A DNA stretch of 64,000 bases from Macrostomum lignano (Eukaryota): positions 186,001-250,000 of the forward strand of contig NIVC01000095.1 in the NCBI GenBank assembly GCA_002269645.1, given 5' to 3'. A program made the translations under genes and the position numbers. Each line of letters begins with the position of its first letter. Within the stretch, counting starts at the first letter, position 1. Shown one piece after another: positions 6,084 through 52,000 of this stretch. The notes beneath the pieces are model-generated. The model was not told the origin of the DNA and made no database searches. It saw only the letters and a list, made by a program, of their open reading frames with translations.

Positions 6084-9000
6084 TCATTCGCTAGCAATCT
6101 TTTCATTGGCCACCTCGAGCGTTGGCTGCGCAATCCTGTTTACTGTCTCCATTCCGACTTCGTTAGTAAATTCATTTGCAGTTTCGTTGGTAGCCTCATT
6201 CGTAGCCTTATTGGTAGTTTGATTGGTAGCTTGATTCGTAGCTTCGTTGGTAGTTTCGTTTGTAGCTTCGTTGGTACCTTCATTTGTAGTTTGGTTGGTA
6301 GCTTGGTTGGTACCTTCATTTGTAGTTTGGTTGGTAGCTTCGTTGGTAGCTTGGTTGGTAGCTTCATTGGTACCTTCGTTTGTAGATTGGTTGGTAGCTT
6401 CGTTGGTACCTTCGTTTGTAGATTGGTTGGTAGCTTCGTTGGTACCTTTGTTTGTAGATTGGTTGGTAGCTTCGTTGGTACCTTCATTTGTAGCTTGGTT
6501 AGTAGCATCGTTGATACCTTCATTTGTAGCTTGGTTGGTAGCTTCGTTGGTACCTTCATTTGTAGTTTGGTTGGTAGCTTCGTTGGTAGCTTGGTTGGTA
6601 GCTTCATTGGTACCTTCGTTTGTAGCTTGGTTGGTAGCTTGGTTGGTACCTTCATTTGTAGTTTGGTTGGTAGCTTCGTTGGTAGCTTGGTTTGTAGTTT
6701 GGTTGGTAGCTTCGTTGGTACCTTCATTTGTAGTTTGGTTGGTAGCTTCGTTAGTAGCTTGGTTGGTAGCTTCGTTTGTAGCTTGGTTGGTAGCTTGGTT
6801 GGTACCTTCATTTGTAGTTTGGTTGGTAGCTTCGTTGGTAGCTTGGTTTGTAGCTTCATTGGTAGTTTCGTTTGTAGCTTGGTTGGTAGATTCGTTACTA
6901 CCTTCATTTGTAGCTTGGTTGATAGCTTCATTGGCAGTCTCACCAGCAGCCACAGCCCCCACCTCTCCTACATCTGCAGCTGGCTCAGAACCAGGGTTCG
7001 CTCCTTCATCCAGACCGGCAGCGGAGTTGGTCTCATAAAGCGCTCCGTTGTGAACGAAAAAGTCGTCAATAATCTGTCGACTCATCTGAGCCAAATCGTT
7101 GTCGGCCAAATTCTGCACCAATTCGATCTTTTTTAATCCGCCGCAGTGTTCGATTTGTTTGCGCAACGATTCGAAACTTTGACCGCTGTCTTCGGATTTG
7201 CGTCTGGCAGCGCTGATTAGAAGTTCGCGAACGCTTAGCAGCACGCAGTGGGTGAGCTCGGTGTCCGACAGGGTCAGCGTCTCCAGGAAGCCTTCCAGAC
7301 AGTTTTCGACGACGAGATTTTTCTGTGAAAGACAACGGAGTGTGAGTAGGTGAGACGTGCGATTAGTGAATAGGTGCGATGAGTGATTGGTGGATAGGTG
7401 CGACGTGTGATTGGTGGATAGGTGCGATGAGTGATTGGTGGATAGGTGCGATGAGTGATTGGTGGATAGGTGCGATGTGTGATTGGTGGATAGGTGCGAT
7501 GTGTGATTGGTGGATAGGTGCGATGAGTGATTGGTGGATAGGTGCGATGAGTGATTGGTGGATAGGTGCGACTTTGAGTCGTAAATAGGTGCCATTTCCT
7601 GGATTCCTGGATAGGTGTCACGTGATTCGTGTACAATTGAGTGGAAGCCGCAGGATGCGGGATTATGCAATTTATAAAATATTTTAGTTGCAAAATAAAT
7701 AATAATTTAAATCGGCTAGTTTAAACATGTTCGTTTAACCTTGCAAATAGCTTACAAACTTGTTGCCCCTAGTGATCACAAAGTTCGGTACAATCCAGAA
7801 GGCTTCGCGTTTCTCGCGCTCGTCAGCTTCTAATAGAATTTGGCCAACGCGAGGCAGGAAACCAGCATCGGCGATCTGGTCCAGGAAGGTGTCCGGTCCG
7901 TCCGACGCGATGCTGGTGAAGAACAGCACCTGCAGGCGAACTTTGGCGTCCGAATGGTCAAGCAGAGGTCGCATCTTGGCTAGCAGATTGTCTGCCAGCA
8001 CGCAGTTTGGCAGCAGAGTCATGGACGAGGCGAAATTGCCAAACACTCGCAAAGCAGGTATTAACTCGTTGTCGTCTCCGCTTGTTAAACAGCGTCGCAA
8101 ATGATGAAGCACATCTTCCCTGAGTAGGAGGCTGGCTCTTGGCTCGCTATCTTCGATGAGGTAGGACATTGCCCAAAGTAGGTGAGGAACGAGAGACCTG
8201 AGAGTTGAGGTGGGCATTTGAGCTTTTGAAATGCACGGAGACTTTTTGATAGACAGATCTTCTGAAAGTCAATCGAAGTTTTACTGCCTGGCTTTCAAAG
8301 TGTAACTGTCATTCGTATTCGACCATTTAGAAAGAAAGCCAGGCCTATTATTAAGATTTGCATTCGTGACGACATGTGCGTATTGATGGCACTAAGGTAT
8401 CCGTGGTATGTTGGCTGTTGGCTTTGTGTGTTAGTTCTCCATCTGAAATAAGACGAACCTCCGAATACCGAAAAGACAATGGCACCCACCCAACAAGAGA
8501 CAGAGACTCCATTACAACAAGAGACAGGGATTCTACCACAACAAGAGACAGGGATTCTACCACAACAAGAGACGGGGACTCCATTACAACAAGAGACAGG
8601 GATTCTACCACAACAAGAGACGGGGACTCCAACACAACAAAAGACAGGGATTCTACCACAACAAGAGACGGGGACTCCAACACAACAAAAGACAGGGATT
8701 CTACCACAACAAGAGACGGGGACTCCAACACAACAAAAGACAGAGAACCCAATACAACAAGAGAACGGGACTCCAACACAACAAGAGACAGGGGCGCCAC
8801 CACAACAAGAGACAGGGGCGCCACCACAACAAAAGACAGGGACTCCAACACAACAAGAGATAGGGACTCCAACACAACAAGAGACAGGGGCGCCACCACA
8901 ACAAGAGACAGGGACTCCAGCACAACAAAAGACAGGGATTCTACCACAACAAGAGACAGGGACTCCAACACAACAAAAGACAGAGAACCAAATACAACAG

Positions 9001-11148
9001 GAGAACGGGACTCCACCACAACAAGAGACAGAGAACCAAATACAACAGGAGAACGGGACTCCACCACAACAAGAGACAGGGGCGCCGCCACAACAAGAGA
9101 CAGGGGCGCCACCACAACAAAAGACAGGGACTCCAACACAACAAGAGATAGGGACTCCAACACAACAAGAGACAGGGGCGCCACCACAACAAGAGACAGG
9201 GACTCCAGCACAACAAGAGACAGGGACTCCAACACAACAAAAGACAGGGATTCTACCACAACAAGAGACAGGGACTCCACCACAACAAAAGACAGGGATT
9301 CTACCACAACAAGAGACGGGGACTCCATTACAACAAGAGACAGGGATTCTACCACAACAAGAGACGGGAACTCCATTACAACAAAAGACAGGGATTCTAC
9401 CACAACAAGAGACAGGGACTCCACCACAACAAAAGACAGGGATTCTACCACAACAAGAGACAGGGACTCCAACACAACAAAAGACAGAGAACCCAATACA
9501 ACAAGAGAACGGGACTCCAACACAACAAGAGACAGGGACTCCAACACAACAAGAGACAGGGGCGCCACCACAACAAGAGACAGTGGCGCCACCACAACAA
9601 GAGACAGGGGCGCCACCACAACAAGAGACAGTGGCGCCACCACAACAAGAGACAGGGACTCCAACACACAACAAGAGACAGGGACTCCAACACAACAAGA
9701 GACAGGGACTCCAACACAACAAGAGACAGGGGCGCCACCACAACAAAAGACAGGGACTCCAACACAACAAGAGACAGGGACTCCAACACAACAAGAGACA
9801 GGGACACCCAACATTAAGAGACAGGGACACCCAACATTAAGAGACAGGGACACCCAACATTAAGAGACAGGGACACCCAACATTAAGAGACAGGGACACC
9901 CAACATTAAGAGACAGGGACACCCAACATTAAGAGACAGGGACACCCAACATTAAGAGACAGGGACACCCAACATTAAGAGACAGGGACACCCAAAATTA
10001 AGAGACAGGGACACCCAACATTAAGAGACAGGGACACCCAACATTAAGAGACGGGGACACCCAACATTAAGAGACAGGGACACCCAACATTAAGAGACAG
10101 GGACACCTATACACACCAAAAGACATGGACGCCTACACACCAAAAGACAGGGACGCCTACACACCAAAAGACAGGGACGCCTACACACCAAAAGACAGGG
10201 ACGCCTACTCATCAAGAGACAGGGACACCCAATATTAAGAGACAGGGACACCCAACATTAAGAGACAGGGACACCCAACATTAAGAGACAGAGACACCCA
10301 ACATTAAGAGACAGGGACACTCAACATTAAGAGACAGGGACACCCAAGATTAAGAGACAGGATGACCCACACACACCAAGAGACGGCTGGCCCCTCCAAA
10401 CACGCACCTATTGTTGGCTCCCTGAGGGTTTCGGCCTGCAACTACCAGCGTACACCACTGATCTCAGCTTACCTATGCGGATGATCCATCAGCTGCATCA
10501 GGTAGGGCACCAAAGTCTTGGCCACTTCAAAGCTGACTCGCGGCTCGTGATCGCGGAACAGATTCACTAGCAGCAGCGAAGTGGCATCCAACACGCCGGA
10601 CGATGGTCGAGAGTCCAGCAGCGAGGTCAGCGCTGGCAGGAGGCCGCAGACCAAAGTTTGGTCGCGCCATTCGGCACATTCGCCGACAATGTTGGCAAGA
10701 GCCCAGCAAGCTTGTTCACGAGTTCGATCGGCTGAAGCGCCAGCGTCCAGCAGCTTCACCAACGGCTGGCAGAGACCTCCTCGGGCTAGCAGGTCGAACT
10801 TCTCCTGTCGGCCAGACAGCAGATTGGTCAGCACCCAGGCGCATTCGTACTGCATGTCCGGTAGCTGACTATTGCCCAGGCCTTCAAGAATCGCATCGAA
10901 AGCGGGGCTGCGCAACAGTCTGGCATAGGAGCTTTCGCGATCGTCGCAGACACGTCGGCGCAGATTTTGTATGCCAAAAAATCGCGTCGGCGGATCGTTG
11001 CTGACTATTTGCGCGATTAACTCGTCGAGATCTTCGGCCTCGGGTGCTGGAGACTCTCCGACATTGGCTGCGGTTGGAGCCGAGGGGACAGCTGCATTCG
11101 CATTAGTCGATCAGTAGTGCTACCGGGAGTGCTCACTTCTTCAGACAT
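6084..11148 (-). CDS. Divergent importin-alpha (karyopherin alpha)-like ARM-repeat protein, no IBB domain, long C-terminal T/N/E/Q/A repeat tail
   Basis: Exons 11148-10473, 8197-7756 and 7322-6084 with GT-AG junctions in consistent phase (..HPH ag|g SLVPHLLWAMSY..; ..RGNKF|KNLVVEN..). Importin-alpha-type ARM motifs: QYECAWVLTN, REQACWALANIVGE, LWAMSYL, PALRVFGN, KREAFWIVPN, GGLKKIELVQN..RQIIDDFF. One base is missing near 11110; ~785 aa if restored. Confidence 0.85.
6150..6945 (-). repeat. Coding 12-bp tandem repeat encoding TNQA/TNEA/TNEG units
   Basis: Roughly 60-65 in-frame units (accaaccaagct, accaacgaagct, acaaatgaaggt) in the last exon of the importin-like gene. The frame stays open into a unique C-terminus (..EVANEKIASE*). 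Confidence 0.9.
7370..7572. repeat. 24-bp minisatellite in importin-like intron 2
   Basis: About 8 copies of gataggtgcgatg(a/t)gtgattggtg. Confidence 0.9.
8487..10378. repeat. Compound minisatellite in importin-like intron 1 (21-bp units, then 23-bp units)
   Basis: acaacaagagacagggactcc variants to ~9790, then acacccaacattaagagacaggg. Explains the long overlapping ORFs on both strands. Confidence 0.95.
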
Positions 11149-12212
11149 TGTGTCGAACTTTGAATTGCTTTGGTTAGCTAAAGTGCAATTGATGATTTCG
11201 AAGTTTTCGATTGAAATTTCGGCGTTGCTCGAGGCTTGTTTTCGCTCGGCTTGATGTGATGTGGTACTGTACGGCTTAGCTGAGGGACACAGACTTCGAT
11301 TTTCAATCGAAATTACCTAAGCCAGCGGCCATAGACGGTTTGCACAGGAGACTGTTACTATTTTTAGAGCATTTGTTAGTCCTGTGGATCTTCGCAGACA
11401 GAGAGTCGCTCTGAGAGAGAGAGAGGCTTTTGAACTTGAGGAATGCCAGTATATAAAACAACAACTTCAAATACTACTATCAAAAAGAGACAGTCTAGTT
11501 TCAAAAGGCTGTAGCTGGGAATACGCCAAAAACATGAGGATCCCTCCTTTCAGACTGTTGACCCTATGGTCAAAGCAGAACATTTTGTCTGTGACAAATT
11601 TGAGCGTAAAGCAACGCTTTGTAGTTTACGAAAAACCACGAAGTTTGTGTTGTTGTAGTATGTCACATGACTTCATGCTCGTTATTTTTTGGAGAATAAA
11701 TCTGACGTTTCATCGCAAAGTGTTGCTTTACAAGCTTAAAATGCAAGTTAGAAATGTCAAGAAGTCTCAAGAATGTCTCCGCAGCTGGGAGTCTGGGAGT
11801 GGAGTTCAAGAATACCCTTGACAACTCAAGGGTTGTTACGTCACAATTGAAGTCACGGTTTTACTGACATCCTAATTCTGTGCAACTGCCTGAGCGACTG
11901 TCATTCAAATTTACTATGCATGCGAAGTGTCAATAAAAGTCATAAAGAGTTATAAGAAAACTCAAGATACCATTTGATTGCATAGGTCATCTAGCAAACA
12001 AATTCTGCCTGTTAAACATATAGACAAGCCGTACAGTCTCTGCTCCGCCCTGCTCACACGAACGCTTTCAACTCAGCCAACGCCGCTGCTCCGACCGCGG
12101 AAACACGTGCCAATCCGATGCGCATAAATTCGCATCTGCCAACTGCTCAAGATAACAAGCTCCAGACTCGACTTAGCTCAAACACTCGAATATCAATCCT
12201 ACTCAAGCAATT

Positions 12213-12407
12213 ATGAAGTGGCAACTCGCTCTCGGACTTTTGCTGTGCGCAGCCCTGGCTGTCGCCGAGCCCACCCAGGAGGAGAAGGCTGAGGCCATGG
12301 CCGATCTGGAGGCTCTGTCCAACGTGGACGAGTCCAGCATGTCGGAGGAGGCCGTTCACAACGCCAAGAAGTTCATCAGGGCTAGGGTCAGGGTTAGGCT
12401 TGGTTAA
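12213..12407 (+). CDS. Small secreted prepropeptide (signal peptide, acidic pro-region, KK, cationic peptide ending in Gly)
   Basis: MKWQLALGLLLCAALAVA|EPTQEEKAEAMADLEALSNVDESSMSEEAVHNA-KK-FIRARVRVRL-G*. GC3-rich codons like the other genes in the window. TATA-like cataaat at ~12123. The 3' end could instead be spliced. Confidence 0.75.
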   Translation: MKWQLALGLLLCAALAVAEPTQEEKAEAMADLEALSNVDESSMSEEAVHNAKKFIRARVRVRLG

Positions 12408-12836
12408 ATGTAAACCGCAGCCACATCTCAGACCCAACTCGCTTCATCAAAGCTTGAGACTCGCTGGCACTGACGACAACTCACTCTGAACTCGGACTCC
12501 TGATGGCAAAACTATTGACTTGATCAGCAGTTTTACAAAAATATAACACCAATTATATTTACCCTCTGTTTAAGATCTCAGTAGAACTATAAGCTTTGTC
12601 TTACTGAACGTTTTTAATTTAACCAAGTCCAGTCTTTCCGTAGTGAACTGTTAATTTTACTTATTCACAGATAATTGTATACTTGTACTCAGTTAAGTCT
12701 CAGTTCGGTGCCTGAGCGCAAAAATCTGGCATTGCGTAAGGCATTGGTCGAGCATTGGAAAAAATTCTCAATATACATACGTATAATAGTATAATATAAT
12801 AGATATATTTTTCTATGGTAATTTATCGGTTGTAGG

Positions 12837-14548
12837 AGGACTGAGAACCATTTCTCAGTCCCCAAACGAGGCCTGAGAAATAGTTCTCAGTCCTGCTATA
12901 AACAGTTGTATTTAACATATGTAAACCAACAACAGGAAGTTCAAATAGTAAGATTTAGAAGCGTCTTGTAAGCACTCACTCGAAAACGATTTCAACGGTG
13001 TTGGTGTTACCATTGATGTTAAGCCTCATTTTCTTTGCAGGATTAGCAGTCTACGTTACTTTGTTCCATAGCTTCAACAGAGCGTTCAGGCTCGGTGTCA
13101 ATAGACAGACTTGATGACTGACCACCAGATTGAAGAGCATGCGATACTTTAACATGGTCTTGTACGTCAAACTGAATATAGCGCTCAATAGCTGTCGAAG
13201 AGTGTCCTGTAACACGAGCGATGTCCTCTCTAGCAAAGCCAGCACGGTGTAGAGTACTTGCGCAAGTCTTGCGTAGAGACTGATTAGTGTACCTCTCAGT
13301 CACTCCAGTTAGGGGAGCCGTTAATTCACGAACAATACCGTCGAAGCTGTGCCGGCCGACGGGTGCGTTTTGGTACCACCTGCCTTGCTGGATGCTGGCA
13401 TCGCTACGCATCCAAGCCAGGAACAAATTCTGAACCGTACAGTTTTCCGGTCTTTTGTCCACATACAGCTTGTAGATGCAGGGTAGACATATATCATGAT
13501 CAGCAGTATGAGATGCTTTAACGGTTTTCAATCGAACAAAACGTCGCTTTATGCCAGCGTTGTTGGTCTTCGTGGCTCTGTTCTCACAGTAAACTAGAAG
13601 TTCTTGACCGTCTTCATGCTGCAACTGGATCTCACAGCTATATCTCAGACCATGCAGCTCCGTGCCTCCACGCAAAGCGAACTGCTTGCCAAGGTAGAAC
13701 ACAAGCGTAAACAGCAGTAATTTCGGCGACGTTGTTGCAAGACGTCCTTTCTGCCACAACTCCTCCTCCAGAGTTGCGGGAATTGGGCTAGACGCATTTG
13801 TCCCCGGAACTAGGCCCTCTCTAGTAGCTTCTTTCATGGCAGCATCCAATGCCATTCTTGCATCCCTGCACGCAGCGTCCTTCCAGAGATTCAGTTCTTT
13901 CTTGAGCGTGTACTGCAGATAGTGTTGTATCATGGAAAATATGTCCCTAAGGGTCGTAGCATTGTATTTAGTGCCATCGACTTTTCGCACCTCGAGAATG
14001 AATATCTTTAATAGATAGTTCCAATCGCAAGCGTTCCATTCATGACGCTCCTTCAACACGAGAAGGCCAGTTGTATCACCATGTAGAATTCGATTGTGTC
14101 AAACCACTGGTCAAAAATTCTTACAGCCCATAGTTCCTTCCTTCGCGTATTTGGTGGGATAGCAGCGTCCAGCTTCCCATGTATTTCGTCAGTCGAGAGC
14201 GTAGCGAATCGATCACTACCAGCAGCAGGATTCGTTGCAGCGGATTCTTTACTTTCAAAATATCGTAGCACTAGATCTAAGTCGTCTTCCATGGTTCTAT
14301 TATATATGCAAATGGATGGACTGCTCAGTGCTCCATCTAGGTAGACGATTTATAACACTTTAGCCAGTCAGTCACATAGCTTGTGCCATAGACTAACTGT
14401 ACTGGATATTGATGCGTATTTTGCTTTCAGTAGGTTAAGTATACATTCTCCTCCTTTTTCCAAATATGTCTTCGCCTCGGCCTGAGAAATGCATCCTCGG
14501 ACTTACTTTTCCATAGCCACACTGGGAAAAGGAGGAGAATTTATACTT
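12837..14548 (-). mobile_element. Crypton-type (DUF3504) tyrosine-recombinase DNA transposon with hairpin-rich ends
   Basis: YR ORF inside. Left end has nested inverted repeats (aggactgagaac 12837-12848 / gttctcagtcct 12883-12894). Right end has a ~22-bp IR (14437-14459 / 14526-14548). ggcctgagaaat occurs at both ends. Exact termini not certain. Confidence 0.7.
13043..14292 (-). CDS. Crypton/DUF3504 tyrosine recombinase (one-base frameshift near 14087)
   Basis: N-part ..AIPPNTRRKELWAVRIFDQW joins, with +1 nt, ..LKIFILEVRKVDGTKYNATTL..VFYLGKQFALRGGTEL..TKTNNAG..WYQNAPVGRH..YTNQSLRKTCASTL..TGHSS..RY. This gives the YR catalytic set R-K-(H>Q)xxR-H-Y. ~416 aa if restored. Confidence 0.85.
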
Positions 14549-14756
14549 CAGCCACCCTGAAGAAAAAATCTCAATGGAATTTTCGCTTTGTGCTACTCTT
14601 CCTGTGAAGCTGTGGGAAAGTAGTATGGAGAAGAATCAACATAGACGATATCACTCGCATGGGCTTGTGATTTTTGTCTTTTGTTTTTTTAATAATCATA
14701 CGTCGTAGATCAACAACATTATTTTATTCTGAGGCGAAGAGCAGTGCGGTGCTATC

Positions 14757-15186
14757 ATGACAAAATCTCGAGCCCAGTGCGCAGCTTATGGCTGCAATTC
14801 CTATGCCTACAAGTGCCCGCATTTGACGCGATTTCATGCATTTCCTTCTGGAGACAGTGCAAGGTATGTAGTTCAGAGAACACATAGTTGACTCCTGTGG
14901 TATGAGTTTTCTTTTTTGATTTTAGAATCACTTTAGTGTTCAAACTCTTGCATCTTTCAGGTGCGAAGACTGGGCTCGGCGATTGTTTCGAGCTGACCTC
15001 CTGGGAAAAGCAAACGAACACAAATGGAAGAGAGCGGTTGTGTGCAGTTTACACTTCAGGGATGATTTGTACACCTGCCCAAATCAACGTCACGAGCCGG
15101 GAACGCGCCTTTTAAGCAGTGCATATCCTGCATTGAACCTTTACAAGGACGCTCCTCGGTTGAACGAAAACGAAAGCCACCGTTAG
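14757..15186 (+). CDS. THAP (C2CH zinc finger) domain protein, 5' exons; probably extends further
   Basis: Exon 14757-14863 (MTKSRAQCAAYGCNSYAYKCPHLTRFHAFPSGDSA), intron gtatgt..tttcag, exon from 14961 (RCEDWARRLFRADLL..VVCSLHF..LLSSAYPALNL). All THAP signature residues are present. One extra A in the A4 run at 15167-15170 gives NEKRKPPLVRR and extends the ORF past the apparent stop at 15186. Confidence 0.85.
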
Positions 15187-18829: not shown

Positions 18830-19576
18830 TCAGACGCTGAACTTGACCCAGTTGGCGCCAGTCTCAATCCATTCATCAACCTGGGCATCCGTGAACTGCA
18901 GCAGACGGCACTTCTTAGTCATCGTGTTGAACAGAGCCCGCCTGGTGCTGCCCTCGCTGGTTGCAGCGGCGGCGCATTCAATCACGCTGTCCACTTCGAC
19001 GTCCTTGAAGCAGTAGTTAGCGTCGTAGTTGTAGCTGGTCCGTTTGAACTGGGTCCGTTTCCAGACGGCCAGCTTGAAAGCCGGAACAGTTGACTTGGGG
19101 GCGACGTATTCGCACATGAATCCGCGAAGGTTTGAGCACTCGGTGTCAATGAACTGCACAGTGGCAGTTGAGCTAGATATGCAGTCCTGGTTGCCAAGGC
19201 TACTAGGCATACCCATGTACCACAGGGAGGTGTTGTAGGGTACATTTCCATAGTCGTTGATCCGCTGCCAGCCGCCCTTAAGGGTGTCTCTCTCGTCCGC
19301 CAGGTCGCTGACTCCGTACCACAGCCTGCAGCCAGCACTCACTGCACTGGGCATGTTGTCCAGCACCTTCAACGATTCGTACTGGTTGATGAGTTCGCCA
19401 TCCATCGACTGGCAGATTTCGTTCGCCTGGCACCAGGTGTAGATATCGTTTCGTCTAGTATAAATACACTTGCCAGCCTCGATGGCGTACGGAGGTGGGC
19501 AGTCAAGAGCCGTTGACAGTTTAGCCAGCAATAGGAGGGTTAAAAGTGTCAGAAGGCTGGTTCGGCAGCAACCCAT
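18830..19576 (-). CDS. Secreted C-type lectin domain protein with C-terminal PAN/apple-like domain
   Basis: Intronless 248-aa ORF. Signal peptide (..LLTLLTLLLLAKLSTA). CTLD: CPPPY..GKCIY..TWCQANEICQSMDGEL..WYGVSD..QDC..CSNLRGFMCE. Then VDSVIECAAAA..ALFNTMTKKCRL. Confidence 0.92.
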   Translation of the reverse strand: MGCCRTSLLTLLTLLLLAKLSTALDCPPPYAIEAGKCIYTRRNDIYTWCQANEICQSMDGELINQYESLKVLDNMPSAVSAGCRLWYGVSDLADERDTLKGGWQRINDYGNVPYNTSLWYMGMPSSLGNQDCISSSTATVQFIDTECSNLRGFMCEYVAPKSTVPAFKLAVWKRTQFKRTSYNYDANYCFKDVEVDSVIECAAAATSEGSTRRALFNTMTKKCRLLQFTDAQVDEWIETGANWVKFSV

Positions 19577-40660: not shown

Positions 40661-43600
40661 ATGCAGCAGCAACAGACTCAGGCTGCCTGCAGCTCCGGCA
40701 GTGCTGGCAGCAGCAGCAGCAGCAGCAGCAGTGCAACATCCACCTCAGTAATGCGACACCACGCCAGACACGCTAAAGCAAAAACAGCACCAGTCACCAC
40801 TGAGGCTGGCCGCCCGCCGCATCCCAACGCTTACCAATGGTCCCGACTAGAGCGACTGTTAGAACGGCTACAACAGGAAGACGCAGGCATCTCTGTGCGC
40901 ACTGTTAAATCCTTTATGTCCTGTCAGCCGTCTTGCTTCACTGGGTCGGAGCTGTGCGGCTGGCTTCTGCGTAACACCGATGCAGAGGATGCTCAGGTTA
41001 GGGCATATCGAGTCTTATTGTCATTATTTTTCTCTAACAATCAATATTTTGAAACTTGCACTTGTCGATATATTGATATCCTCATTTTCTACCCTCTGTC
41101 TTCTGACTCGGCCTTTTTTATTTTGTCTCCGTTCTCCCTCTTAACTCCCCGGCATTCTCTCTCACTCCAAGTCACTTCTTCTCACTCCCTCTCACTCTCG
41201 CTTCCTCTCCCTTCACCACCCTTCCCCTCACTTCCTCTCACTCTCCGTCACTCCCTCTCGCTTCCTCTCACCCCCTCTCGCTTCCTCTCACTCCCTCTCA
41301 CTCTCCGTCACTCCCTCTCGCTTCCTCTCACTCCCTCTCACTCTTGCTTCCTCTCACTCCCTCTCACTCTCCGTCACTCCCTCTCGCTTCCTTTCACTCC
41401 CTCTCGCTTCCTCTCACTCTCTCTCACTCTCGCTTCCTCGCACTCCCTCTCACTCTCGCTTCCTCTCATTCCCTCTCACTCTCGCTTCCTCTCACTCTCT
41501 CACTCTCGCTTCCTCGCACTCCCTCTCACTCTCCGTCACTCCCTCTCGCTTCCTCTCACTCACTCTCGCTTCCTCTCACTCCCTCTCGCTTCCTCTCACT
41601 CCCTCTCACTCTCGCTTCCTCTCACTCTCTCACTCTCGCTTCCTCTCACTCTCGCTTCCTCTCACTCCCTCTCACTCTCGCTTCCTCTCACTCTCTCACT
41701 CTCGCTTCCTCTCACTCTCTCACTCTCGCTTCCTCTCACTCTCGCTTCCTCTCACTCCCTCTCACTCTCGCTTCCTCTCACTCTCTCACTCTCGCTTCCT
41801 CTCACTCTCGCTTCCTCTCACTCTCTCACTCTCGCTTCCTCTCACTTGGAGACAGTAGTAGTAGTGGCAGTAGTAGCAGTAGTAGTAGTATTAGTAGCAG
41901 TAGTAGTAGTGCTAGTAGTGTACTATTAGCAGTAGTACTTGGACTATTAGTAGTAATATTTGTTGTAGTTTTAGTAATATTAGTGTTGGTAGTGCCTTGG
42001 GCTAGGTAGGTAGTGCTACTACCAGTAGCAGCAGTCAATTTGCTAAACACATGCGAGCTACTGGCTAACTAATGACTCTCCGATCCGACCATTACCGCAG
42101 GAGGCCTGTCACGTGGCCAGCATGCTGGCAGCTCACGGTTACATCATCCCAGTCGAAGGCACGGCTCTGGTTGTACGCAACGATTCTTCCTATTATCGAT
42201 TTCAAACGCCCTGTCTGTGGCCCAGTAAATCACCAGATCGGCTGGACAACACTGACTATGCTGTCTACCTGTGCAAGCGAACACTGCTCAATAAGCAGCG
42301 ATTGGAATTGGCCAATTATGAGGCTGAGAATTTGGCCAGGCTGCAGCGCCTACTGTCTCACAAATGGGAGTTTATCTACCTGCAGGCGGAGGCCGAGGCT
42401 AAGGTTGATAGGTAAAGCTGATTTCAACTTTATTTTTGTTACAATGGATCTTTTGGATTGTAGAATTACCAAGCTCTATCATCTTAGTTCCACGTAAATG
42501 AGGCCAAATTATTGGGCCACCGCTACCCTCCCAGACCCAAGGCTCAGCCACCACCCTCCCAGACCCCAGGCTCAGCCACCGCCCTCCCAGACCCAAGGCT
42601 CAGCCACCGCCCTCCCAGACCCCAGGCTCAGCCACCGCCCTCCCAGACCCCAGGCTCAGCCATCGCCCTCCCAGACCCCAGGCTCAGCCATCGCCCTCCC
42701 AGACCCCAGGCTCAGCCACCGCCCTTCCAGGCTTAGCCACCACCATCCCAGACCCCAGGCTCAGCCACCGCCCTCCCAGACCCCAGGCTCAGCCACCACC
42801 ATCCCAGACCCCAGGCTCAGCCACCGCCCTCCCAGACCCCAGGCCCAGCCACCGCCCTCCCAGACCCCAGGCTCAGCCACCGCCCTCCCAGACCCCAGGC
42901 TCAGCCACCGCCCTCCCAGACCCCAGGCTCATCCACCGCCCTCCCAGACCCCAGGCTCATCCACCGCCCTCCCAGACCCCAGGCTCAGCCACCGCCCTCC
43001 CAGACCCCAGGCTCAGCCACCGCCCTCCCAGACCCCAGGCTCAGCCACCGCCCTCCCAGACCCCAGGCTCAGCCACCGCCCTCCCAGACCCCAGGCTCAT
43101 CCACCGCCCTCCCAGACCCCAGGCTCATCCACCGCCCTCCCAGACCCCAGGCTCATCCACCGCCCTCCCAGACCCCAGGCTCAGCCACCGCCCTCCCAGA
43201 CCCCAGGCTCAGCCACCGCCCTCCCAGACCCCAGGCTCAGCCACCGCCCTCCCAGACCCCAGGCTCAGCCACCGCCCTCCCAGACCCCAGGCTCATCCAC
43301 CGCCCTCCCAGACCCCAGGCTCATCCACCGCCCTCCCAGACCCCAGGCTCAGCCACCGCCCTCCCAGACCCCAGGCTCATCCACCGCCCTCCCAGACCCC
43401 AGGCTCAGCCACCGCCCTCCCAGACCCCAGGCTCATCCACCGCCCTCCCAGACCCCAGGCTCATCCACCGCCCTCCCAGACCCCAGGCTCAGCCACCGCC
43501 CTCCCAGACCCCAGGCTCAGCCACCGCCCTCCCAGACCCCAGGCTCAGCCACCGCCCTCCCAGACCCCAGGCTCATCCACCGCCCTCCCAGACCCCAGGC

Positions 43601-44876
43601 TCATCCACCGCCCTCCCAGACCCCAGGCTCATCCACCGCCCTCCCAGACCCCAGGCTCAGCCACCGCCCTCCCAGACCCCAGGCTCAGCCACCGCCCTCC
43701 CAGACCCCAGGCTCAGCCACCGCCCTCCCAGACCCCAGGCTCATCCACCGCCCTCCCAGACCCCAGGCTCATCCACCGCCCTCCCAGACCCCAGGCTCAG
43801 CCACCGCCCTCCCAGACCCCAGGCTCAGCCACCGCCCTCCCAGACCCAGGTGCAGCAGCCACTCAGCTTACATTATCAGTAGTTGCGCCTCCAGCTGCTC
43901 AATATGCAGACATCAGAGGCAAATTCGCACCCAGTTGAGCTCTGATATTGACAGCAGTTCTCACAGTGTCGCATCGGAGTTGGCAGTTTGGGTTGCAAGA
44001 GAGACAGCGGCGCCTCTGCGCTTATCATGGGCCCGCAGTCCGGAACAATGGACCGGCCCGTTAGTCACGCAGCGGACAGCTTTGAAAATAATTTTCTAAT
44101 TCCTAAATACACTGATACATAAAATTGTTCTGTGTATTTACGGGTAGCAGCTGTGCTTTTAGTGCCCTCTGTTCTGCTTACGAGCGGTCTGTAAATTTTT
44201 CAGACACTACAACAGACACTACCAGACACTACCACAGACACTACCAGACACTACCACAGACACTACCACAGGCACTACCAGACACTACCACAGGCACTAC
44301 AACATACACTACCACAGGCACTACAACATACACTACCACAGACACTACAGCAGACACTACCACAGGCACTACAACAGACACTACAACAGACACTACCAGA
44401 CACTACCAGACACTACCACAGACACTACCAGACACTACCACAGACACAACCACAGACACTACAACGGATACTGCAAAAGACACCACCACAGACACGCTAA
44501 TTAATCATTCTATCCGCCACTCTCAACCTGTGCAGGAAGCTGGAACGGCTCGAGCGCATGGTGCTGGAGAGTCAGGAGCGCGGCTTCTGGCTGCTCTACA
44601 GGCCGCCGCCTGGCGCAGTCGTGGCCACGGAGGTCGACATGCGCAAGCTGTGCCGGGCTAAACGGCCAAAGAAGGTGGCCACCAGGCCCGCCACCTTCCC
44701 CATACCGAGCGGCCGGCTCAGTCCCGTGGAGCCGTGTGAGCCAGCCGCGAAGGCTGACAAACTGCGGCAGGCACTGGCTAGGCGGTGAGTTAGTCTCAGG
44801 TGACAGACCGGCTGACAGACAGACACTAAGACAGACAGACAGACAGCCAGACAGACACTAAGACAGACAGACACTA

Positions 44877-44949
<73 letters not shown>

Positions 44950-45793
44950 CACTAAGACAGACAGACAGACACTAAGACACTAAGACAGTGAGGCCCAGTT
45001 CGTATACCAGAAATGAGGCAATTGCGGCACCGATTCCAAACGCCCGCCCCCTCTCAGTCGCGTGAAAGTGTCCAAAGCGGCCGAGAGCGCCATATGCTAC
45101 TATCAGCAGTATGCCGAATTTGACGCATTCATTGGCGGCGGCCTGCCCGACCAGAGCCAGAATCCGTGGGTATCGGACAGCGCCGACTATTGGGAATCTG
45201 AGCGTCGAACCCGGGACGTCCCGGCTAGGCGGGTGAAGCGCTGGGGCTTCAGCATTCACGAGCTGCTGCGCGACCCGGCCGGCCGGCAGGAATTCGAGAA
45301 ATGGCTACTAAAAGAGGTTAGCGCCGAGAATTTGGCCTTCTGGGAGGCCTGCCAACGGTTGCGCCACGCCCCGGCCAGTCAGGTACACAAGGAGGTCAAT
45401 CGGATCTACGACACCTTCCTTGGACCGGACGCTACGGAGCCGGTCAACGTGGCCGGCCCGGTGGCCGAAGCTGTCCGAAAACGGATGTCCAGCGCTACAG
45501 CCGCCTCAGCTGATCGTTACGCATTCGAAGCGGCCGAGGAGCACATATTTCAGCTGATGAAGTCCGACTCCTACGGCAGATTCCTTCGTTCAGACTTCTA
45601 CCGGCAATTGTTAGCAAGTGGTAAGAAAAAATTAAGCAGCAAAAAGCAGCAACGATTGTCTAGTAGCGACGCGGCGACCAACGCCGTTAACGTCAACACG
45701 GCGTCCGCTGCGGCCGCCAGACGATCGAGGGACGCTGGAACTGTCGACGCCGTAACAATTCCCGGGGCCGAAGGGACCGACGCCGCAAATTAA
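40661..45793 (+). CDS. RGS7: R7-family regulator of G-protein signalling (DEP-DHEX-GGL-RGS), RGS6/RGS7/EGL-10-like
   Basis: Exons 40661-40996, 42101-42411, 44536-44784 and 45058-45793 (543 aa, phases consistent). GISVRTVKSFMS..FTGSEL; AAHGY..YRFQTPCLWPS..TDYAVYLCKRTL; ESQERGFW; GGL (VSKAAES..NPWVSDS); RVKRWGFSIHELLRDPAGR..ENLAFW..LMKSDSYGRFLRS. Confidence 0.95.
41150..42030. repeat. CT-rich low-complexity repeat followed by a degenerate (AGT)n tract, RGS intron 1
   Basis: ctctcactctcgcttc-type units to ~41845, then agtagtagc/agtagtagt. Confidence 0.92.
42520..43850. repeat. 28-bp C-rich minisatellite, RGS intron 2
   Basis: About 47 copies of (g/t)ccaccgccctcccagaccccaggctca; explains the 533-aa Pro-rich ORF. 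Confidence 0.97.
44203..44495. repeat. gacactacca(ca) short tandem repeat, RGS intron 2
   Basis: 10-12-bp degenerate units. Confidence 0.9.
44805..44990. repeat. (GACA)n microsatellite, RGS intron 3
   Basis: Tetranucleotide run with gacactaa interruptions. Confidence 0.95.
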
Positions 45794-49029: not shown

Positions 49030-52000
49030 ATGCTACCTCGTTTATTAACGTTACTAGCGCCATCCTTAATACGTCAGAAAGGTGTGTCGGCTGTTTTCCT
49101 TCATTGCTCAAGCCCATTGTTTGTACGAAAACCGTCAATACTATCTATCTTAAACTCGCCCTGCGCAATGCCGCAACAGCAAAATGGAGGCCAGAAGCAG
49201 CAACAACGTTCCATCACTTCTTTCTTCTCGAAAACTGCCGCGTCTTCTGCGGCACAGTCAGATAGTAGTACTATTATCACCGATAGTACTCGACGCCCTT
49301 TATCGACCACACCGCCAACAAAGACTACTACCGACGCGAAGGTGAAGTCGCTGACTTCGAAAGCGGAGGCTTCGACGACAATTAAGAAAGAAAATAAATT
49401 GTCTTTAGATTGGCCAGATAAACAAGACAAGCGGAACAAGCGAAAGAAGGCTGAGTCTGAGTCCGGTTCCTCTGATTCTGAATCCAACGATGAGTCTTTG
49501 TCGTCGCCTCAGCAACAACAGGATTCTCCATCTCCGCCTGCCAAGCGTCGCCGAATGATTTCCTCCTCGTCATCTTCGGAATCTGCCGCTTCCGAATCTG
49601 CTTCCGATAAAAGCAAATCTAAATTGAAACCGAAACCGTCGAAATCTGACACAAAACCGAAATCTGACGCAAAACCGAAATCTGACACAAAACCGAAATC
49701 TGACACAAAACCGAAATCTGACACAAAACCGAAATCTGACACAAAACCGAAATCTGACACAAAACCGAAATCTGACACAAAACCGAAATCTGACGCAAAA
49801 CCAAAAGTAGCCAGGAAAAAATCTGCCACAAGTAAGCCGGAAAAGAAGCAGGCAAACAAAATCGCCGCCGAGGTAAAAGAGGTTGAAAAATCGGACCAGG
49901 AGAAGAAGACAGCAGCTGAAGCGCCGTCTGAGCAGCAGCCGAAGGAAGAATCGGGTTATAATCCCGGCAAAGCTCGCTACGATCCCATAGAGGATGCGAG
50001 CTGGTCGAGCGGCCAGCCGGTGCCCTACTTGGCTCTGGCCAAAACATTCGAAGCCATCGAGGCCACGCCTGGCCGGTTAAGAATCTTAGAGTTGCTATGC
50101 AATTTTCTTCGTTCAGTTCGTCTGCTCAGCCCTAAAGATTTGCTGCCGTGCGTCTATCTGTGCTTGAATCAGTTGGCGCCAGCTTACGAGGCTGTTGAAC
50201 TGGGCGTCGGTGACTCCGTGCTGATAAAAGCCATGGCTTTGAGCACCGGCTCTACCGTAGATAAAATTCGCCAACGTGCTCAAGTTGTCGGCGATCTTGG
50301 CGCAGTGAGCGAGTCGCTACGTTCGCGTCAAGCTGTGATGTGCCAGCCGAAACCTCTGACTGTTGCCGGCGTATTTCAGCGGCTACGCGAGGTGGCCGAT
50401 CTCTCTGGGAATGCCGCGCAGCAGAAGAAGGTGCTTAACACCTACCAGTAACTTTGATAGCTAATTATCTACTTGTGGTATCCATCGTAGCTAATCATCT
50501 ACCTGTGGTATCTATATGGTAGCTAATTACGAGTATCTACCTGTGGTATCCATCGTAGCTAATCATCTACCTGTGGTATCCATCGTAGCTAATTATCTAC
50601 CTGTGATATCTTTGGTAGCTAATTACTCAGCTGTGGTATCTATGGTAGCTAATTATCTACCTGTGGTATCTATGGTAGCTAATTATCTACCTGTGGTATC
50701 TTTGGTAGCTATTTACTCAGCTGTGGTATCTATGGTAGCTAATTATCTACCTGTGGTATCTTTGGTAGCTAATTACTCATCTGTGGTATCTTTGGTAGCT
50801 AATTACTCATCTGTGGTATCTTTGGTAGCTAATTACTCAGCTGTGGTATCTAATGTAGGCTCACAGCTAGTAATAGAGTTGACTATTTGTGGTGGTTAAT
50901 TGTCACATCAAAGTTTCTTACAAAACCCGCAGGTGTCAAAAATTCAATCCCTGCTAGTCTCCTGTCGCCAGTGCGAAGCCAAATACCTCATCCGATCTTT
51001 GTCCGGTCGTCTCAGAATCGGCCTGGCCGAGCTCTCCGTCCTGTCCGCTCTCGGCCATGCTTTTGTCCGGTCGCCGAATTTGAAAACTCCGGACGCTTCG
51101 CGTGGACAATCTGCGGATTCTTGGAAACGACGCCAAGACGAAGCGGCTCTGCTAGTGCGGACCGCCTACTGCCGCTGCCCCAATTATGACTTGCTGGTTG
51201 CCGCTCTGCTTGAGGAGACTCGGGATGAAGACTGGTGAGCCTGTTTAAGGCATTTGAATTCTTAGACGTTAAAACAGAATTCTTAGAAAGCGGGACTATT
51301 GGTTTAAGAAGTTTCTGTGGAGGGTCTAATGGATGAGATCTTGGAAAACAATTAAACCGTTTCTTAGAAAACAAAAGTACAGTAGTGGTTTCTTAGAAAA
51401 CGGGAAGTGGATTCTAAAAAAACATGAAGTGGTTTCTTAGCAAACGGAAAGTGGATTCTTAGAAAACGGGAAGTGGTTTATTAGAAAACGGGAAGTGGAT
51501 TCTTAGAAAACGGAAAGTGGTTTATTAGAAAACGGGAAGTGGTTTATTAGAAAACGGGAACTGGATTCTTAGAAAACGGGAAGTGGTTTATTAAAAAACG
51601 GGAAGTGGATTCTTAGAAAACGGAAAGTGGTTTATTAGAAAACGGGAAGTGGATTCTTAGAAAACGGAAAGTGGTTTATTAAAAAACGGGAAGTGGATTC
51701 TTAGAAAACGGAAAGTGGTTTATTAGAAAACGGAAAGTGGATTCTTAGAAAACGGAAAGTGGTTTATTAGAAAACGGGAAGTGGATTCTTAGAAAACGGG
51801 AAGTGGATTCTTAGAAAACGGGAAGTGGATTCTTAGAAAACGGGAAGTGGTTTATTAGAAAACGGAAAGTGGATTCTTAGAAAACGGGAAGTGGATTCTT
51901 AGAAAACAGGAAGAGGTTTATTAGAAAATGGGAAGTGGATTCTTAGAAAACGAGAAGTGGTTTATAAGACAATAGGAAGTGGATTCTTAGAAAACGAGAA

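Follow-up and report, generated by a model that had tools for sequence, protein, structure and literature searches.

To our knowledge, very few gene-encoded antimicrobial peptides (AMPs) are known from flatworms. The preprodermaseptins of frogs form a multigene family, in which a conserved signal peptide is followed by an acidic pro-piece with a dibasic site at its end, and then by one hypervariable cationic peptide. In Hydra, the arminin cargo is approximately 30 amino acid residues long, and some Hydra cargoes are Cys-rich. The AMP families of Hydra are genus-restricted and tandemly duplicated, and their secreted precursors show a bipartite negative/positive charge (PMC10945409). [quoted passage not shown] This gene, which is small, intronless, and transcribed, belongs to a large family of secreted prepropeptides restricted to Macrostomum. 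A first-pass annotation, made from the letters of the window, had proposed that it encodes an amidated cationic peptide, FIRARVRVRL-NH2, and had left four functions open: a defense, gland, or seminal-fluid peptide, or an RLamide neuropeptide.

A prepropeptide gene and its family

The open reading frame (ORF) at 12213-12407 (+) was translated to MKWQLALGLLLCAALAVAEPTQEEKAEAMADLEALSNVDESSMSEEAVHNAKKFIRARVRVRLG*, with 64 codons before the stop, and in-frame stops were present 5' of the ATG. The layout given by the first-pass annotation (an 18-aa signal peptide, a 33-aa pro-region with 10 Asp/Glu, KK, FIRARVRVRL, Gly, and a stop) was exact, and was strengthened by its conservation among paralogues. 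The features of the gene were as follows:

11973-12695 (+): whole gene unit, which is the duplication unit (upstream block, 5' untranslated region (UTR), coding sequence (CDS), and 3'UTR), from blastn and alignment A1
12213-12266 (+): signal peptide MKWQLALGLLLCAALAVA, 18 aa, with a predicted cut AVA/EP
12267-12365 (+): acidic pro-region EPTQEEKAEAMADLEALSNVDESSMSEEAVHNA, 33 aa, net charge of -9, with 10 Asp/Glu and 1 Lys
12366-12371 (+): Lys52-Lys53, predicted endoproteolytic site; K53 invariant and K52 nearly so (alignments A3 and A4)
12372-12401 (+): cargo FIRARVRVRL, 10 aa, codons TTC ATC (AGG GYN)x4
12402-12404 (+): Gly64, predicted amide donor; GGT invariant in 13/13 genomic copies
12405-12407 (+): stop codon TAA; a stop (TAA or TAG) right after Gly in every copy

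The signal peptide and its cleavage position were judged by the (-3,-1) small-residue rule. The N-terminus (MKW-QLALGLLLCAALAVA) had a positive n-region, a hydrophobic h-region, and A-V-A before the cut, and removal of the signal peptide after AVA is predicted. The net charge of the pro-region (-9) is set against a cargo of +4 plus the KK site; with a free N-terminus and an amidated C-terminus, the cargo would carry +5. The hydrophobic moment of FIRARVRVRL was maximal at 180 degrees/residue (1.41, versus 0.17 at 100 degrees), and approximately 4% of the permutations of the cargo attained this moment. Together with the alternation in all 13 close paralogues, this bears out the earlier view of the Arg/hydrophobic alternation as an amphipathic β-strand, which would have one Arg face and one hydrophobic face. 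An AlphaFold2 model of the whole unprocessed chain (family alignment) consisted only of helices with a pLDDT of 64, and was uninformative on the processed 10-mer. The computed masses were 1283.84 (M) for FIRARVRVRL-NH2 and 1341.85 for the Gly-extended acid.

An ORF of 64 codons alone is within chance, many ORFs of the window having been listed. This ORF was far beyond chance because there were more than 30 diverged paralogue clusters, uninterrupted Gly-stop copies in 13/13 cases, and a GC content at third codon positions (GC3) of 0.77 that differed from the flanks (CDS GC of 0.60; flank GC of 0.44 and 0.38). All 13 genomic copies were intronless and uninterrupted ORFs of 62-66 codons ending in GGT and a stop. 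For the annotation of M. lignano, transcripts guided by RNA-seq had been divided with the help of experimental poly(A) and trans-splicing data, and their ORFs called with TransDecoder (Wudarski 2017, PMC5730564); therefore, the gene model reflects transcription, at least of the near-identical copies pooled. The locus is very probably a real gene for a secreted precursor.

It is scarcely credible that the ORF is a chance product, or an exon spliced at AG/GT within the cargo into a downstream gene, and this reading has already been largely refuted. The cargo is written TTC ATC (AGG GYN)x4, with Arg-Val as AGG GTN, and this accounts for both the strict alternation and the donor-like AG/GT strings. 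These codon pairs resemble splice donors, and two old ab initio models (P0005 and P0062) leave the cargo by a splice of this kind, so that the ORF continues into a serpin or Cys-loop channel gene. However, the AG/GT strings were not conserved (absent from the FIHIHF copies), whereas the Gly-stop was, and the sequence 3' of the gene diverged quickly among paralogues. This explanation was rejected because Gly-stop ends every one of the 13 genomic copies, as it does dozens of models derived from transcripts. The first-pass annotation had named splicing at gtcagg, gttagg, or gttaaa, and homologues with unrelated C-termini, as outcomes that would speak against it. The three strings are present, yet the transcript-based models were unspliced, and unrelated C-termini were confined to P0005 and P0062, spliced at AG/GT inside Arg-Val codons.

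The exact 64-aa gene was found on three contigs (L001-L003), of which L003 is NIVC01000095.1 of assembly GCA_002269645.1 and was 100% identical to window 2213-22407. Although the three CDSs were identical, this says nothing on selection because their flanks were also ~99% identical. Three near-identical copies fit the hidden polyploidy of M. lignano described in two reports (PMC10733133, PMC10468722). The protein of the window gene has already been deposited in NCBI and UniRef as a hypothetical protein. On the other hand, no publication on the family gene ids, the signal peptide, or the cargo strings was found in the literature searched, and none that described Macrostomum AMPs or a neuropeptide or prohormone of this family; the earlier word "undescribed" thus stands for the literature, but not for the databases.

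Single-sequence, profile, and broader profile searches gave a family of 31 clusters at 90% identity, with roughly 80 gene models (listed accessions and cluster member counts). Among 1.84 billion representatives, the profile hidden Markov model search matched only Macrostomum-type sequences, in agreement with the broader profile search, and detected no homologue in any other flatworm or animal. The members are all M. lignano BOX15_Mlig "hypothetical proteins", save one 929-bp Logan contig (L009). The gene copies are mostly tandem: L007 holds five genes and a fragment in a stretch of 20 kb, and a 985-kb contig carries six models. The window gene is a dispersed singleton; the search for paralogues proposed by the first-pass annotation gave none elsewhere in the window (tblastn), but many family members elsewhere in M. 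lignano. When window 10000-15000 was compared with paralogue loci L004-L008 by blastn, homology started at 11973-12098 and stopped at 12350-12695 (72-89% identity), giving a duplication unit of only ~0.6-0.7 kb. Cluster look-ups returned no Logan RNA-seq contigs for close paralogues. We see here an undescribed family of AMP-like precursors that is restricted to one lineage. Its founding type of cargo, a natural (Arg/His-hydrophobic)n strand with a predicted amide, is unusual for a natural peptide. As far as we know, the strict period-2 pattern of Arg or His with hydrophobic residues over 6-10 positions comes mostly from designers (β-sheet AMPs and catalytic amyloids), and is generally avoided in natural proteins since it promotes aggregation.

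Several other sequences of the family were observed. L009 (1-929; Logan SRR31628392) looks genomic and encodes a prepro part with ~56% identity and a Pro/Arg-rich cargo containing RLPRVR repeats, preceded on its 5' side by a diverged upstream block (GGAAAAACGTGGCCAGC...GCATAAATA); it is probably from another Macrostomum or an unassembled paralogue. Orphan fragments at L007 10872-10969, L008 12304-12401, L006 407-466, and L007 2776-2835 are gene-less copies of the upstream region, and cargo ends (..AVDNAKKWLRVRARVRIG) without the 5' half. They point to a continuing turnover of genes, by birth and death, within the clusters. The GenBank model BOX15_Mlig004661g1 (P0002, L005 6001-8935; 85 aa, with a doubled pro-region) is a chimera of two identical tandem copies 2.7 kb apart, and several other family models have 5' extensions that are translated 5'UTR or promoter.

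Conservation along the precursor and variation of the cargo

Nucleotide identity among paralogues was highest in the signal region (0.97), followed by the upstream block (0.91), pro-region (0.80), cargo (0.68), and 3'UTR (0.50-0.57). Pooled Nei-Gojobori estimates for the coding parts were as follows:

Signal region: dN/dS of 0.17, pS of 0.10, and pN of 0.02
Pro-region: dN/dS of 1.16, pS of 0.15, and pN of 0.17
KK plus cargo: dN/dS of 0.61, pS of 0.37, and pN of 0.26

The cargo was the fastest-changing coding part (highest pS and pN), and the pro-region retained its acidity despite a dN/dS of ~1.16. In spite of this change, all 13 distinct close cargoes conformed to HH(BH)n, a pair of hydrophobic residues before (Arg/His-hydrophobic)n, with Gly next (for example, FIRARVRVRL, FVRVRARIRL, WLRVRARVRI, IFRVRARIHI, FVRVHVRF, and FIHIHF). 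At least 16 residue changes were found in the cargoes, all within class; with a class-keeping probability of 0.405 each, the rough estimate is 0.405^16, or ~5e-7. The codon for Arg differed among copies (AGG, CGT, or CGC), and His sometimes took the place of Arg. A mere degenerate, telomere-like AGGGTY hexamer repeat read as Arg-Val was rejected, the pattern being kept through these changes; varied Arg codons and His replacement therefore point to selection on the peptide more than to a DNA hexamer repeat. Since the length of the cargo changes in 6-nt steps, hexamer slippage probably supplied the variation in repeat number.

Distant members shared the signal M[KR]WQ[LF][AV]LGLLLC... and an acidic pro-region, and carried different cationic cargoes of 6-37 aa, whose classes were Trp/Arg-rich, Pro/Arg-rich, two-Cys, and His/Tyr/Arg-rich. 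These cargoes include GFHVHFH-G, FHLHLP-GK, FRIRIRWGRVARNVLRLL-GK, and WLLRRIRIRWRRVLRVASRVYRIYRYLPI-GK, as well as WRRRRRFRWRKAIRVAGKVAKAVL, WRIKSACKIFRRLLHLARKCYAKK-G, the Pro/Arg-rich FLRVRLPRVRMPRVRLPRVRLPRLRVRFRWSKK, and LFFRRRRRRHYFVYHSRRRYYRRRYHRRHHVHIVAYH-G. Lys at position -1 of the junction between the pro-region and cargo was invariant across the superfamily; most members had KK, KKK, or RKK there, and the three most divergent cargo types (P0028/P0029, P0044, and P0045) had one K only. Of the 28 distinct cargo strings, among them a truncated and a mis-spliced model, 21 ended in G or GK, the classical signals for amidation. The net charges of the pro-region and cargo were inversely correlated (Spearman, -0.80; 26 sequences), ranging from -5/0 to -15/+14. 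The window gene and its close paralogues thus had Gly next to the stop (13/13 copies), a conserved basic site at the junction, a cationic amphipathic cargo, and a balancing anionic pro-region. From these sequence features, cleavage and amidation of the precursor appear reasonably likely.

Proposed processing and function of the peptide

The reading that we favor is a secreted, membrane-active, amphipathic β-strand defense peptide, for which, by analogy, we see about an even chance. The 18-aa signal peptide would send the precursor into the endoplasmic reticulum and be removed there. The anionic pro-region would neutralize and mask the cationic tail in transit, as charge matching across the family suggests, until cleavage on the C-terminal side of the invariant Lys53 by a proprotein convertase or by another, Lys-specific protease; M. 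lignano has a pc2 homologue, along with a GYIRFamide-immunoreactive (GYIRFamidergic) nervous system (PMC4490696). The conserved G/GK-stop points to conversion of the terminal Gly64 to a C-terminal amide by peptidylglycine α-amidating enzymes. The freed FIRARVRVRL-NH2 (+5 at neutral pH) would form the amphipathic strand and, by analogy, may act extracellularly as a membrane-active host-defense peptide, antimicrobial or deterrent, while the family would vary its cargo and retain its signal peptide, similar to the AMP families of frog skin and Hydra. An unchanging signal, an anionic pro-piece whose charge matches that of the cargo, and a polycationic cargo that is hypervariable constitute the signature of host-defense or cytolytic precursors, the opposite of neuropeptide precursors; the defense reading is therefore favored by the β-strand amphipath, together with the bactericidal activity of designed peptides of the same pattern. 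If it is true, Macrostomum, a transgenic and RNAi-tractable model, has a large and fast-evolving effector repertoire, which would be of use in studying host-microbe interactions, regeneration-associated immunity, and gene-family birth.

Several points weigh against the defense reading. The site of expression, peptide mass, cleavage, amidation, and activity are all inferred. As a convertase site, KK is less effective than KR, and the three divergent cargo types have a single Lys only. The close cargoes are very short for AMPs (6-10 aa), and some contain His only and are uncharged at neutral pH. The correlation of charge rests on 26 phylogenetically non-independent sequences, and the low pS of the signal region and 5' half (0.10, versus 0.37 in the cargo) could partly reflect gene conversion, not selection. 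Rapid diversification, tandem expansion, and lineage restriction are also marks of reproductive proteins. Moreover, the pc2 homologue of M. lignano was reported to be specific to the nervous system, a better fit to a neuropeptide than to a gland product (PMC4490696). As regards the site of expression, six family gene ids had no match in the supplements searched from M. lignano studies on the germline/neoblasts, intestine, ageing, ploidy, seminal fluid, and sex-limited evolution.

A non-antimicrobial secretion of reproductive or other glands, made in prostate, cement, or other gland cells, and passed to the mate or released onto the partner's or own tissues, shares many of the same traits: seminal-fluid proteins, too, are typically small, carry a signal peptide, diverge fast, and belong to families that are lineage-restricted and tandemly expanded. 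Many unannotated and fast-evolving reproduction-related transcripts are described in M. lignano (PMC5977470, PMC7336406). We nevertheless regard this reading as unlikely, because charge-matched anionic pro-regions with G/GK on polycationic Trp/Arg and Pro/Arg cargoes are a specific signature of cytolytic/antimicrobial precursors; the lack of any family gene id in the searched supplements of the seminal-fluid in situ screen is weak evidence, since other transcript ids were used there. A neuropeptide or hormone precursor, in which FIRARVRVRL-NH2 is an "RLamide" acting on a receptor, would account for short mature peptides (6-10 aa) with a dibasic site before them and Gly amidation, in an animal whose nervous system expresses a pc2 homologue (PMC4490696). 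However, the mature part of neuropeptide precursors is the most conserved and has orthologues in related taxa, whereas in this family the signal was the most conserved part and the cargo the least (pN of 0.02 and 0.26, respectively), and the profile search gave no homologue in other flatworms. The C-terminal residue of the cargo (L, I, F, H, or P) and its length (6-37 aa) also vary, and there are dozens of tandem copies with one peptide per copy, making this role decidedly unlikely. Of the four functions left open by the first-pass annotation, the family evidence thus favors a defense-like role over a neuropeptide, but does not separate defense from a gland or seminal-fluid role. Even if the peptide were reproductive or neuronal, the hypervariation of the cargo on a frozen signal peptide would still be striking.

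The other two alternatives concern the physical state of the product. Once freed from the solubilizing acidic pro-region, alternating cargoes might assemble into β-sheet fibrils or gels that serve as the matrix of mucus, rhabdites, adhesive, or plugs; pH or Zn2+ could act as a switch for the cargoes with His, which might even have catalytic activity. The perfect period-2 polar/non-polar pattern, with a maximal β-strand hydrophobic moment, in all 13 close cargoes is in line with this, and FIHIHF-G, GFHVHFH-G, and FHLHLP-GK resemble the designed Zn-dependent catalytic-amyloid heptapeptides LHLHLRL and IHIHIQI (PMC10008563). On the other hand, a 10-mer with four to five charges of the same sign resists self-assembly when no polyanion is present, and no context of structural proteins was observed. 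The distant members are non-alternating (helical-type, Pro/Arg-rich, or two-Cys); therefore, assembly cannot be the family-wide function. A self-assembling material is rather unlikely on this evidence. A narrower proposal, that the alternating subfamily, especially (His-hydrophobic)n-NH2 (FIHIHF, GFHVHFH, and FHLHLP), comprises natural gene-encoded minimal self-assembling β-sheet peptides for a functional amyloid-like material, kept soluble by the charge-matched acidic pro-region, switchable by pH/Zn2+, and possibly catalytic, is quite improbable; if true, the subfamily would be the biological counterpart of the designed catalytic amyloid heptapeptides. It is very improbable that the product remains unprocessed, as a secreted 46-aa bipolar mini-protein with an acidic helix and basic tail, or that the acidic pro-peptide is the active part. 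In favor of this, cleavage is a prediction from sequence, AlphaFold gave the whole chain as helices (low confidence), and the pro-region motif L-E-x-L-S-N-x-D-E is well conserved; however, the dN/dS of the pro-region is ~1.16, and the invariant Lys at -1 and enriched terminal G/GK make sense only with a tail that is released and amidated. A defense peptide released from its precursor remains our preferred reading.

Flanking elements, neighborhood, and comparison with known systems

Three features outside of the CDS were noted:

12099-12130 (+): conserved upstream block GGAAACACGTGCCAATCCGATGCGCATAAATT, 32 nt, 91% mean pairwise identity across eight paralogue loci
12104-12109, 12110-12114, and 12123-12129 (+): motifs of the upstream block read from its sequence, namely, E-box CACGTG, CCAAT, and TATA-like CATAAAT, respectively
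12537-12547 (+): conserved 3'UTR element AAAAATATAAC, in which AAATAT (12539-12544) is invariant in A1, the rest of the 3'UTR being 50-57% identical

The pattern of the upstream block across loci (A1) was GGAAACACGTGCCAATCC.ATG.GCATAAATT, and the sequence farther 5' than the 32-nt block was only 64-65% identical. The block had a single match in the window, with 0 expected by chance, and each gene copy had its 17-nt core exactly once, the core being absent from the remainder of the examined M. lignano loci and of the window. The block is probably the core promoter, and it is a candidate cell-type-specific promoter for transgenesis. Against this, some transcript-derived partial CDSs (P0012, P0035, and P0017) run through the block (ETRANLMCIN in P0012 is its translation), and the transcription start is not fixed; read-through from tandem neighbors or alternative start sites must therefore exist. 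A canonical AATAAA was absent 3' of the stop, the only related string being AATATA at 12540, and the AAATAT element may be a variant poly(A) signal.

The neighborhood of the gene contained several other ORFs. A 338-aa ORF at 13043-14059 (-), 640 bp downstream of the peptide gene, matched DUF3504 (2e-19), QRICH1, and, weakly, Phage_integrase; on the basis of these matches it is a Crypton-derived tyrosine-recombinase-like domain, in a mobile-element remnant or domesticated gene. A 148-aa ORF at 10469-10915 (-) with three Armadillo repeats (Arm, 5.5e-14) was importin-α-like, and may be an exon or a retro-fragment. At 8486-10384 and 6084-7670, a 24-bp tandem array of ~80 copies was open in four frames and was neighbored by an array of 12/36/96-bp periods, which sits inside an ORF called a 552-aa gene by GenBank; such low-complexity array "genes" may be repeat artefacts. 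A 248-aa ORF at 18830-19576 (-), ~6.5 kb from the peptide gene, contained a C-type lectin domain (1e-06), and is a possible immune-type neighbor whose link to the peptide gene is not established. Farther away, ORFs with DEP, GGL, and RGS domains (an RGS7-like gene) at 40661-45793 (+) were split by a 28-bp tandem array (42526-43847; 47 copies, GC of 0.65), and an ORF with a DNA ligase N-terminal domain was located at 49030-50451. The density of tandem repeats was extreme (55 TRF rows scoring at least 300 in 64 kb), and local GC swung from 0.31 to 0.65.

The precursor shares with the frog preprodermaseptin (FSAP) superfamily a conserved signal, an acidic pro-piece, a single hypervariable cationic C-terminal peptide that is often Gly/Gly-Lys-amidated, and a multigene organization. 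It differs in the site of cleavage (KK or a single K, versus KR in frogs), the intronless gene, the flatworm host, and the cargo: a 6-10-aa β-strand alternator, versus a 13-34-aa helix. In 12 scanned members, no Pfam match was above the threshold and none was to the frog signal/propeptide family. A Lock_Gag1-like match on the acidic pro-region was sub-threshold (14.1 bits against a cutoff of 27) and was rejected as spurious, and no PDB chain matched the family. Without Pfam homology, the family is therefore an analogue, and not a member, of the frog and Hydra families. Taxonomic restriction, tandem duplication, and bipartite precursor charge are common to the Hydra arminins/periculins and the Macrostomum family; there is no homology, the profile search finding only Macrostomum, and activity and expression have been demonstrated for the Hydra peptides, whereas the Macrostomum family is known from sequence. 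The amidated neuropeptides of flatworms (FLPs such as GYIRFamide, and NPFs), some in the same animal, also have a secretory precursor, basic sites, and Gly-directed amidation; however, their cargoes are conserved across flatworms, whereas the cargo of this family is hypervariable and the family is absent outside Macrostomum.

The closest likenesses of the cargo itself were found among designed peptides. The catalytic amyloids Ac-LHLHLRL-NH2 and Ac-IHIHIQI-NH2 are Zn2+-dependent, amidated, and built on a His/hydrophobic alternation (PMC10008563). Their likeness, which includes a length of 6-7 residues, is limited to the His paralogues (FIHIHF, GFHVHFH, and FHLHLP), does not extend to the Arg peptide of the window, and is a resemblance only, acetylation not being expected. 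The design formula of Ong et al. is reportedly (X1Y1X2Y2)n-NH2, with an amidated C-terminus. A synthetic alternating peptide, IRIKIRIK (IK8L), is a broad-spectrum bactericidal β-sheet former (PMC4330034, and the references to Ong et al. cited there). These synthetic β-sheet AMPs have 8-12 residues and a strict alternation of Ile/Val/Phe with Arg/Lys, to be compared with FIRARVRVRL, FVRVRVRL, and IFRVRVRI. In contrast to the designed peptides, the Macrostomum cargoes are encoded within precursors, begin with two hydrophobic residues, and use Arg or His, but never Lys, in the repeat.

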